Assembly (NCBI RefSeq): GCF_006345805.1
Contig: NC_043009.1
Location: forward strand, 27,280,001 to 27,344,000
Direction: 5' to 3'
DNA from: Octopus sinensis
Taxonomy: Eukaryota
DNA: 64,000 bases
Part shown: positions 61,401-62,107 of the stretch, one piece after another
How positions within the stretch are numbered: the first letter of the stretch is position 1
Layout: each line of letters opens with the position of its first letter
Position numbers and translations under genes: made by a program
Notes under the pieces: generated by a model
Told to the model about the DNA's origin: nothing
Seen by the model: only the letters and a program-made list of their open reading frames with translations
Database searches by the model: none

Positions 61401-62107
61401 CTTTCCATGATGTTTCACGAGTGTAACATCACCCCCTTTGATGTTTGGGAATCTCAGATGTTTTTTTCGGCTGATGAGTACGAGTCACCTATATTTACTG
61501 CAATTTTTGTAGCCTTATTAAAGATGTCTTCGTACGAAACAATTGTACCGATATATTGATCCATTCGTGTTGCTTTTTTCCTATATATATATATATATAT
61601 ATATATATATATATATATATATATATATATATATATGTATATCTGAGTATCTTTTTCTGTATATGCATATATGTATATATGTATAGTTGAAAAATAAAAC
61701 GCTATTTTCCAGTGTGGAGATGGACAATATTTATTCGATAATTTCTCAGTACTATTGATTAATTAAGGATTATTGATTCTTCATTGTGTTCCCTACATGC
61801 CTATGTGTATATTGAATTATCTATATATAGTAAAGGGGCATCGAATCCAACTCAAAATAACTGTATACTAATCTCCACTTTTCTTCTTTTCAGAGCAAAC
61901 GGCTTAGGTGTTGCGTCAGTATCGGCCCGCATTGGTGGCATAATTGCACCCTTTATACTTCAGCTGTCAGCCTATATAAAATGGCTTCCTCTAAGTATTT
62001 ACGGTGTCCTTTCAGTTATGTCCGGCATGCTGTTGCTCTTACTGCCAGAACCAAAGAATAAAGACTTGCCGCAAACATTTGAAGATCTGGACAACTGGAA
62101 GACCTGA
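49125..62107 (+). CDS. slc22: SLC22-family transporter G2, intact 8-exon gene (~550 aa)
   Basis: join(49125-49498,50404-50507,52489-52643,54267-54435,56287-56577,57396-57610,57925-58033,61894-62107) = 1631 nt with compatible phases and no stops; 552 aa if the in-frame ATG at 49097 is used. Motifs: GTFGPFQ, four ectodomain Cys with N-glycosylation sequons, [51 protein letters not shown]. Confidence 0.93.
50404..50507 (+). CDS. slc22: G2 exon 2
   Basis: [35 protein letters not shown]. Confidence 0.92.
51422..51748. mobile_element. G2-specific fold-back insertion (104-bp perfect inverted repeat plus ~100-bp tail) in (TA)n
   Basis: 51422-51525 is the exact reverse complement of 51541-51644; absent from G1 intron 2 (~20325-20370). 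Confidence 0.8.
52489..52643 (+). CDS. slc22: G2 exon 3
   Basis: [51 protein letters not shown]. Confidence 0.92.
54267..54435 (+). CDS. slc22: G2 exon 4
   Basis: [55 protein letters not shown]; 169 nt, donor gtgagt. Confidence 0.92.
56287..56577 (+). CDS. slc22: G2 exon 5
   Basis: HLPESPRWL plus central loop; 291 nt. Confidence 0.92.
56727..56950 (+). mobile_element. SINE family 1 copy
   Basis: Orthologous to 26556-26780. Confidence 0.8.
57396..57610 (+). CDS. slc22: G2 exon 6
   Basis: [12 protein letters not shown]...; 215 nt. Confidence 0.92.
57925..58033 (+). CDS. slc22: G2 exon 7
   Basis: ...[26 protein letters not shown]; 109 nt. Confidence 0.92.
61311..61581 (+). mobile_element. 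G2-specific ~270-bp insertion in (TA)n carrying the hammerhead motif (Penelope-derived/retrozyme-like)
   Basis: Absent at the equivalent sites ~1470-1490 and ~31195-31215; flanked by TA repeats. Confidence 0.65.
61467..61551 (+). ncRNA. Candidate type I hammerhead ribozyme, intact core
   Basis: Stem I tcgg/ccga, core CUGAUGA (61471-61477), stem II gtacga/tcgtac, GAAA (61536-61539), palindromic stem III ACAAUUGU, GUA cleavage triplet (cut after 61547). Confidence 0.75.
61894..62107 (+). CDS. slc22: G2 exon 8 (terminal)
   Basis: ANGLG...[21 protein letters not shown]. Confidence 0.92.

Follow-up and report, generated by a model that had tools for sequence, protein, structure and literature searches.

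Minimal type I hammerhead ribozymes of Penelope-like elements (PLEs) have been described by Cervera & de la Pena (2014) as having a helix I of 4-5 base pairs (bp), a helix II of 6-8 bp, the pair G10.1-C11.1 and a palindromic 15.x-16.x segment; most of them occur solo, in truncated PLEs, and pairs of motifs on opposite strands are often seen (PMC4209133). Here, a motif of this kind is analysed that lies at positions 61467-61551 of the forward strand of a 64,000-nucleotide (nt) stretch of Octopus sinensis DNA (contig NC_043009.1, positions 27,280,001 to 27,344,000, called the window throughout), within the last intron of G2, one of the copies of an SLC22 gene array. It is quite probable that this hammerhead is the 3' ribozyme module of a PLE-type piece sitting in a (TA)n tract of the G2 intron, where it would probably be an inactive passenger and not a regulator of the gene.

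The window motif shares with the PLE hammerheads the type I topology, the G10.1-C11.1 pair, a palindromic helix III extendable only in the dimeric form and the solo occurrence, and its helices I and II of 4 and 7 bp fall within the sizes given for the class (PMC4209133). PLE hammerheads are found near element 3' ends, inverted truncated copies of the elements are common, and an insertion bias towards (TA)n has been reported for Naiads and proposed for Neptune (PMC8557442); the window motif, too, lies towards the 3' end of an insertion, whose (TA)n target is like that of some PLE clades. It differs from the published motifs in that helix III is a full palindrome of 8 nt and not the minimal form of 0-2 bp, in that loop 2 has 44 nt and a hairpin of its own, in that the unpaired nucleotide between A9 and 10.1 is absent, and in that the unit has no attached PLE open reading frame (ORF) or demonstrable pseudo-long-terminal-repeat (pLTR) sequence.

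Animal retrozymes are PLE derivatives in which solo monomers are frequent, with ~43% of the Xenopus copies being intronic (bioRxiv 10.64898/2026.07.22.740005). For the metazoan non-LTR retrozymes, a derivation from PLEs has been proposed and solo monomers have been described as non-mobile offspring (PMC7229834; Li et al. 2026 preprint). The window segment resembles these elements in its unit size of ~270 nt, in being low in GC and in having a type I hammerhead, whereas their defining head-to-tail tandem of ~170-400-nt units is absent, the window holding one copy and the relatives being inverted pairs. Given that this tandem arrangement is missing, circular RNA is not expected from the G2 locus. 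The newt satellite 2 and axolotl HHR_Amex1 hammerheads also have a weak monomeric helix III and a palindromic loop, and cleave efficiently only as double hammerheads (PMC7229834); they differ from the window motif in having contacts between loops 1 and 2, a helix I of 6 bp and long tandem arrays. The intronic hammerheads of amniotes (RECK, CTCL and DTNB; Rfam HH9/HH10) are, as here, of type I and on the sense strand of an intron of a protein-coding gene. They are set apart from the window motif by their conservation at orthologous sites in birds, reptiles and mammals, with helices and tertiary contacts of canonical form (PMC6155905), while the window motif is absent from the last introns of both neighbouring paralogs and is not matched by the Rfam models.

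The hammerhead motif and the segment that contains it

The motif reads UCGG-CUGAUGA-GUACGAG...CUUCGUAC-GAA-ACAAUUGU-A/CCGA, with the slash before CCGA marking the predicted cleavage site. Its parts are the following:

61467..61470 (+): helix I, 5' strand UCGG, pairing with CCGA at 61548..61551
61471..61477 (+): catalytic core box C3-A9, CUGAUGA
61478..61535 (+): helix II arm, GUACGAG with CUUCGUAC, 7 bp including one G-U pair, with G10.1-C11.1
61536..61538 (+): core nucleotides G12, A13 and A14
61539..61546 (+): helix III, the perfect 8-nt palindrome ACAAUUGU, with A15.1 and U16.1
61547..61548 (+): predicted scissile bond after A17, GUA/C, placed from the motif position
61548..61551 (+): helix I, 3' strand CCGA

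The conserved core is complete, with C3 U4 G5 A6 N7 G8 A9, G12 A13 A14, the pair A15.1-U16.1 and a non-G nucleotide at H17, which is A at 61547. Three helices surround the core and helix I is open-ended, as in type I, although helix I is weak with the native flanks. The 44-nt loop of helix II contains a 6-bp hairpin, CUGCAA/UUGUAG. Helix III would form 2 bp and a tetraloop in the monomer and an 8-bp duplex between two copies, so that ACAAUUGU permits a dimeric fold. These features place the motif among the minimal type I hammerheads in which helix III is palindromic, the PLE and retrozyme kind that works as a dimer. A first-pass annotation of this DNA had described the motif in the same way, and each of its elements was found where it had been placed: the complete core with G10.1:C11.1, A15.1:U16.1 and a cleavable GUA, a stem I of 4 bp (tcgg/ccga), a stem II of 6-7 bp with a small hairpin in its loop, and the palindromic stem III. 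Its assignment to the PLE and retrozyme type also held, given the relatives in three Octopus species, the hit of a model built without the window sequence and the PLE-like features of the insertion.

The motif is part of a segment that is specific to G2 and is bounded on both sides by (TA)n:

61270..61309 (no strand assigned): left flank, (CT)n followed by (TA)15 AA (TA)4
61310..61581 (+): ~271-nt segment, specific to G2, with the hammerhead near its 3' end
61552..61581 (+): 3' tail of 30 nt ending in ...CTTTTTTCC, with (TA)n directly after
61582..61635 (no strand assigned): right flank, (TA)27, beginning 34 nt past the cleavage site and followed by TG TATATCTGAG

Relatives in octopus DNA and the probable link to Penelope-like elements

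Octopus DNA reached by way of neighbouring genes (a sample of ~214 kb, later 257 kb) contains other hammerheads built like that of the window, with a short helix I, a long helix II, a palindromic helix III of 8 nt, a short tail and then (TA)n; tails of 45-82 nt, comparable to that of the window, are found at the ends of octopus copies. At the O. sinensis locus L004, a motif of 85 nt, the length of the window motif, is found at 4959-5043 (-) and reads UUUUC-CUGAUGA-GAAGAU..44 nt..GUUUUC-GAA-ACAUAUGU-C/GGAAG. It has an inverted partner at 5425-5512 (+), the arms being 91-93% complementary with (TA)n on both sides, and both copies are also present at the orthologous O. vulgaris locus, L002. Smaller forms are a compact hammerhead at L005 16097-16143 (+), with a helix II of 11 bp and the palindrome ACAGCUGU, and a very compact inverted pair in O. 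bimaculoides (L008, 74-106 (-) and 486-518 (+)), with helices I and II of 5 bp each and the palindrome AGUAUACU. Using a relaxed descriptor, 8 motifs with a C3-G8 core were found versus 0.8 expected in shuffled sequence; for those with a palindrome of at least 6 nt, the numbers are 6 and 0.17. The relatives in L004, L002, L005, L006 and L008 form a family within the genus, in which the helix sequences differ and the pairing is kept.

A covariance model, R1, was built from the L004 and L002 copies alone, leaving the window sequence out, and the window was searched with it with filters off. The top hit is 61466-61552, at full length, with 25.2 bits and an E-value of about 0.004. R1 also finds a non-orthologous large-loop copy in O. 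bimaculoides at L008 1021-1101 (-), with 74.7 bits and homologous flanks, and a weaker candidate at L006 2337-2390 (+) with the palindrome ACGUACGU. In the alignment, 92% of the pair cells are standard-paired, versus 75% after shuffling and 35-58% after sliding, and changes on both sides are seen in 9 of 12 pairs; because the alignment was fitted to the model, this count of compensatory pairs is read as leaning towards structure.

Two non-orthologous large-loop copies, one in O. sinensis and one in O. bimaculoides, are each extended by a further conserved module of ~230 nt that runs up to a second microsatellite (L004 4723-4958 (-) and L008 800-1020 (-)). The L004 (+) copy ends with the large-loop unit itself, with (TA)n directly behind it. 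This arrangement may be that of a composite element or of a nested insertion.

PLEs make up a considerable share of octopus genomes and have been active recently (PMC13282606, PMC8967140). An autonomous PLE is found at L005 10001-12604, with an ORF of 867 amino acids that contains an N-terminal DKG region, a reverse transcriptase, a CxxC linker and a GIY-YIG endonuclease, and a PLE endonuclease fragment lies at L001 1319-1750. Pfam has no family that matches the PLE N-terminal and endonuclease fragments, which were recognised because of the full ORF in L005. The autonomous PLEs in the sampled loci are Neptune-like. Both the L001 and the L005 copies end at (TA)n, and in each a compact hammerhead-like motif with a U3-A8 core stands 55-63 nt before the (TA)n (L001 2684-2715 and L005 13217-13253). 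With a further U3-A8 motif at L006 8510-8542 (-), these have a UUGANAA core 45-63 nt before the junction. Taken alone, U3-A8 matches are mildly enriched, with 3 observed versus 0.54 expected; a covariation of the U3-A8 core has been described in a PLE of Schistosoma (PMC4209133).

The position relative to (TA)n recurs in most of these motifs. A tract of (TA)5 or longer is found 34-82 nt past the cleavage site in 6 of 7 independent octopus hammerheads, versus a baseline of 7.3% of positions that have such a tract within 100 nt downstream, which gives P about 1e-6. The layout in the window, with the hammerhead, a spacing of 34 nt and then (TA)n, is that of the 3' ends of the autonomous PLEs in L001 and L005, although no sequence homology to a PLE with an ORF was found. 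The link to PLEs rests on architecture and target site, given that no similarity to a PLE 3' untranslated region (UTR) was found. This recurring architecture and the leave-one-out R1 hit argue that the window motif belongs to the known class of PLE minimal hammerheads.

The ~271-nt piece would then be either a PLE that has lost most of its 5' part or a short non-autonomous element that PLE enzymes mobilised; in either case, we infer mobilisation by PLE machinery. The native role of the hammerhead in such elements is the processing of multimeric element transcripts, two copies pairing through the palindromic helix III to give a double hammerhead. The G2 copy is most likely transcribed within the intron, cleaves little or not at all, and is removed with the intron.

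Several observations weigh against this reading. No similarity of the window insert to the 3' UTRs of the autonomous PLEs was found, and no second copy of the 271-nt sequence was found in the ~257 kb of sampled octopus DNA. Outside the core, the insert and the L004/L008 subfamily give a weak local alignment (z about 2); homology over the full insert to the L004 copies was considered and set aside for the same weakness. The R1 E-value is modest, at 0.004-0.016, and is roughly calibrated. G10.1 stands directly after A9, where an unpaired nucleotide is usual, and a loop 2 of 44 nt is unusual among published minimal hammerheads. The low activity is deduced from motifs of other species and from folding. 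To these are added the greater closeness to each other of the two gene copies that do not have the segment and the silence of Rfam, each of which is taken up below with the explanation on which it bears.

History of the segment and expected activity of the motif

The SLC22 array in the window is tandem, with a period of ~30.2 kb, and the protein matches of its exons are Octopus proteins. Locus L001 (O. sinensis CM016871.1), which is the upstream paralog, overlaps the start of the window, its positions 13580-25539 being 100% identical to window 1-11960 over 11,960 bp. G2, the copy that hosts the hammerhead, is on the + strand, and the part of it that concerns the motif is as follows:

58034..61893 (+): last intron of G2, from the donor GTAAGT to the acceptor TTTTCAG
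61894..62107 (+): last coding exon of G2, with the stop codon

The penultimate exon ends at 58033, directly before GTAAGT, and its junction with the last exon, which starts at 61894 after TTTTCAG, gives ...TVVR/ANG..., as in the annotated paralog protein. The bond predicted to be cut, 61547/61548, lies in sense orientation within this intron, 346 nt upstream of the terminal exon, where the first-pass annotation had estimated ~345 nt. Downstream of G2, a remnant of a mariner/Tc1-type transposase (...HQDNARPHSAKIT...PYSLNLAPSDYHLF...) is found at window 63068-63300 (+). Copies of a short interspersed repeat (...ctggtactttatttatcgaccccgaaaggatgaaaggcaaagtcgacc...), which we take to be an octopus short interspersed nuclear element, lie at 63700-63830 (+) and 56723-56872 (-).

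The last introns of the two paralogous copies, A and B, read (CT)n TTCA (TA)7 AAAGTGTG TATATCTGAG without interruption at the corresponding sites (window 1437-1497 and 31168-31222), and nothing of the segment is seen there; the sequence flanking these sites has 97.5% identity to that of G2. The segment is thus absent from both paralogous gene copies in the window, and the copy-specificity that had been claimed for it stands. No further copy of 61310-61581 was found within the window either, in agreement with the single copy noted at first, and exact look-up and a homology search with the translated ORFs of the insert gave no other copies. A metagenome scan for the two halves of the hammerhead gave 0 matches.

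We infer that the event was an insertion rather than a loss. The opposite history, in which the segment predates the SLC22 duplication and was lost in the ancestor of A and B by slippage or recombination between (TA)n tracts, is unlikely but has evidence on its side. A and B share 98.3% identity, against about 95-96% with G2, so that parsimony does not separate a single loss in their ancestor from a single gain in G2, and (TA)n on both sides of the segment would favour a deletion. Against it, the order of hammerhead, short tail and (TA)n resembles fresh PLE-type insertion junctions elsewhere, and neither A nor B keeps a remnant of the segment. O. bimaculoides was tried as an outgroup and rejected, its last intron being only ~670 nt and too divergent to align.

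For the insertion as it now stands in G2, the question is whether the hammerhead cleaves. The first-pass annotation had proposed that it cuts the G2 pre-mRNA ahead of the last exon, giving this copy a post-transcriptional control of its own or producing small circular RNAs. Such activity would be favoured by the intact core, the cleavable GUA and the stable helix II, by the sense orientation of a motif that is specific to G2, and by the precedent of domesticated intronic hammerheads in amniotes (PMC6155905). It would also be favoured by the fold of the isolated 85-mer, in which helices I and II form with probabilities of about 0.9 and 0.98, respectively, five pairs of helix II reaching 0.97-0.99.

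The monomeric helix III has a probability of only ~0.04 in the isolated 85-mer, and when 30-100 nt of native flank are included it stays below 0.1 while helix I falls below 0.06. A region of 101 nt folds no better than its shuffles (z = -0.37), and in its minimum free energy (MFE) structure the region of the cleavage site is paired with the 3' strand of helix II. Two copies are predicted to co-fold into a double hammerhead with an intermolecular helix III of 8 bp, 8.8 kcal/mol below two monomers. A dimer between transcripts at this energy is estimated to require RNA at about micromolar concentration, an implausible level for an intron.

Descriptor and R1 scans found no second sense-strand hammerhead in the window, so that neither a circle by two cleavages nor a dimer within one transcript would be available. 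A second element in the last intron of G2 is an inverted repeat (window 59614-59770 (-) and 59930-60115 (+)) with paralogs at 63-153, 29586-29648 and 29845-29916. Its arms carry CTGATGA...GAAACA(NN)TGT boxes, which are intact in the paralogs and mutated to TCGATGG in G2, and R1 scores them at 14-17 bits (E 0.25-1.3). This element has GAAACAGCTGTAAGAC in common with the L005 motif and may belong to a related hammerhead family that has decayed, or the resemblance may be due to chance. It was rejected as a dimer partner, since in G2 the core box is mutated, helix II is unpaired and the palindrome ACAUAUGU is mismatched at two central positions. A further CTGATGA...GAAAC match at 62656-62737, with its paralogs, has no helix I and was treated as chance.

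Cleavage inside an intron is often compatible with splicing, given that the exons stay tethered to the polymerase, and this too counts against a control of G2 by the motif. With no partner, no recognisable tertiary contacts and a marginal helix I in context, little cleavage is to be expected. Indeed, self-cleavage of single minimal hammerheads from PLEs was not detectable in vitro, and dimers cleaved weakly (PMC4209133). On these folding predictions and by analogy with the PLE motifs, the window hammerhead most likely cleaves little or not at all. The proposal of small circular RNAs fails on the single sense-strand hammerhead in the window, given that two sites are required. Regulation of G2 by self-cleavage is not supported, considering the inactivity of single PLE motifs in vitro, the loss of helix I in the flanks and the lack of any sign of conservation, including across the paralogs, or of domestication like that of the amniote intronic hammerheads. 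An active hammerhead at this site is, taken as a whole, distinctly improbable.

Activity in vivo could nonetheless arise at the body temperature of the octopus, with the help of RNA chaperones, or if the motif paired with sister-copy transcripts that have the same helices. If the hammerhead were active in this way, some of the G2 pre-mRNA would be truncated and G2 would be given an expression level of its own within a recently duplicated array. Separately, the ~270-nt unit with the large loop 2 may represent an undescribed, (TA)n-targeting, non-autonomous family of octopods; this proposal, in both its parts, is improbable.

Chance resemblance, Rfam and significance

A hammerhead descriptor with strict and loose rules was written for this analysis, and dinucleotide-preserving shuffles of the window (n=3000) served as the null. 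The strict rules, in a scan of the kind that the first-pass annotation had suggested, recovered exactly 61467-61551 as the sole match in the window. Among the shuffled windows they matched 2 of 3000, and none of the 3000 when helix II had at least 6 bp. The loose rules have a false-positive rate of 0.05 per window.

A search with the Rfam hammerhead models had also been suggested, and this gave no support: the Rfam 15 models have no match in the whole window at the gathering threshold, and none in 61300-61700 at E up to 10. The Rfam scan of the window returned only microsatellite-driven miRNA noise, with (TA)n giving spurious sub-threshold matches to mir-1277 and mir-297. The same models miss all of the octopus hammerheads, the compact ones included, in the window and in L001-L006 at gathering thresholds, and they do not match the compact L005 motif (L005 16000-16250) at E up to 10. 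Given that the compact relatives are missed as well, the silence of Rfam says little about the window motif, and it has more to do with what the models cover than with the motif itself.

These results bear on whether the motif could be a chance match in AT-rich intronic sequence with no ribozyme ancestry. The lack of an Rfam match, the false positives of the loose descriptor and the 101-nt MFE structure, in which the hammerhead is not formed, would be in keeping with chance; moreover, a few strict matches are expected at the scale of a gigabase genome, where a lone one is unsurprising by itself. On the other side stand the rarity of strict matches in shuffled windows, the blindness of Rfam to the compact relatives and the first rank that the leave-one-out model gives to the motif in the window. 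The relatives also repeat features that the descriptor does not require, namely an 8-nt ACAnnUGU palindrome, a loop 2 of 44-47 nt, a length of 85-88 nt and a tail that leads into (TA)n. Chance is set aside as extremely improbable because a family of related octopus hammerheads exists.

The window motif is best described as a new member of the known class of PLE minimal hammerheads. Solo PLE hammerheads are scattered in their thousands across invertebrate genomes, many of them in introns, and the significance of this one for gene regulation is probably none. No earlier description of hammerheads in cephalopods was found in the searchable literature, and because the Rfam models miss the octopus hammerheads, automated annotation will under-report ribozymes in octopus genomes. 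The value of the finding is that it documents PLE-type hammerheads in cephalopods, among them a subfamily in which the helix II arm is unusually large and helix III is a fixed palindrome of 8 nt, and shows that autonomous octopus PLEs have core variants of the U3-A8 type at their 3' ends.

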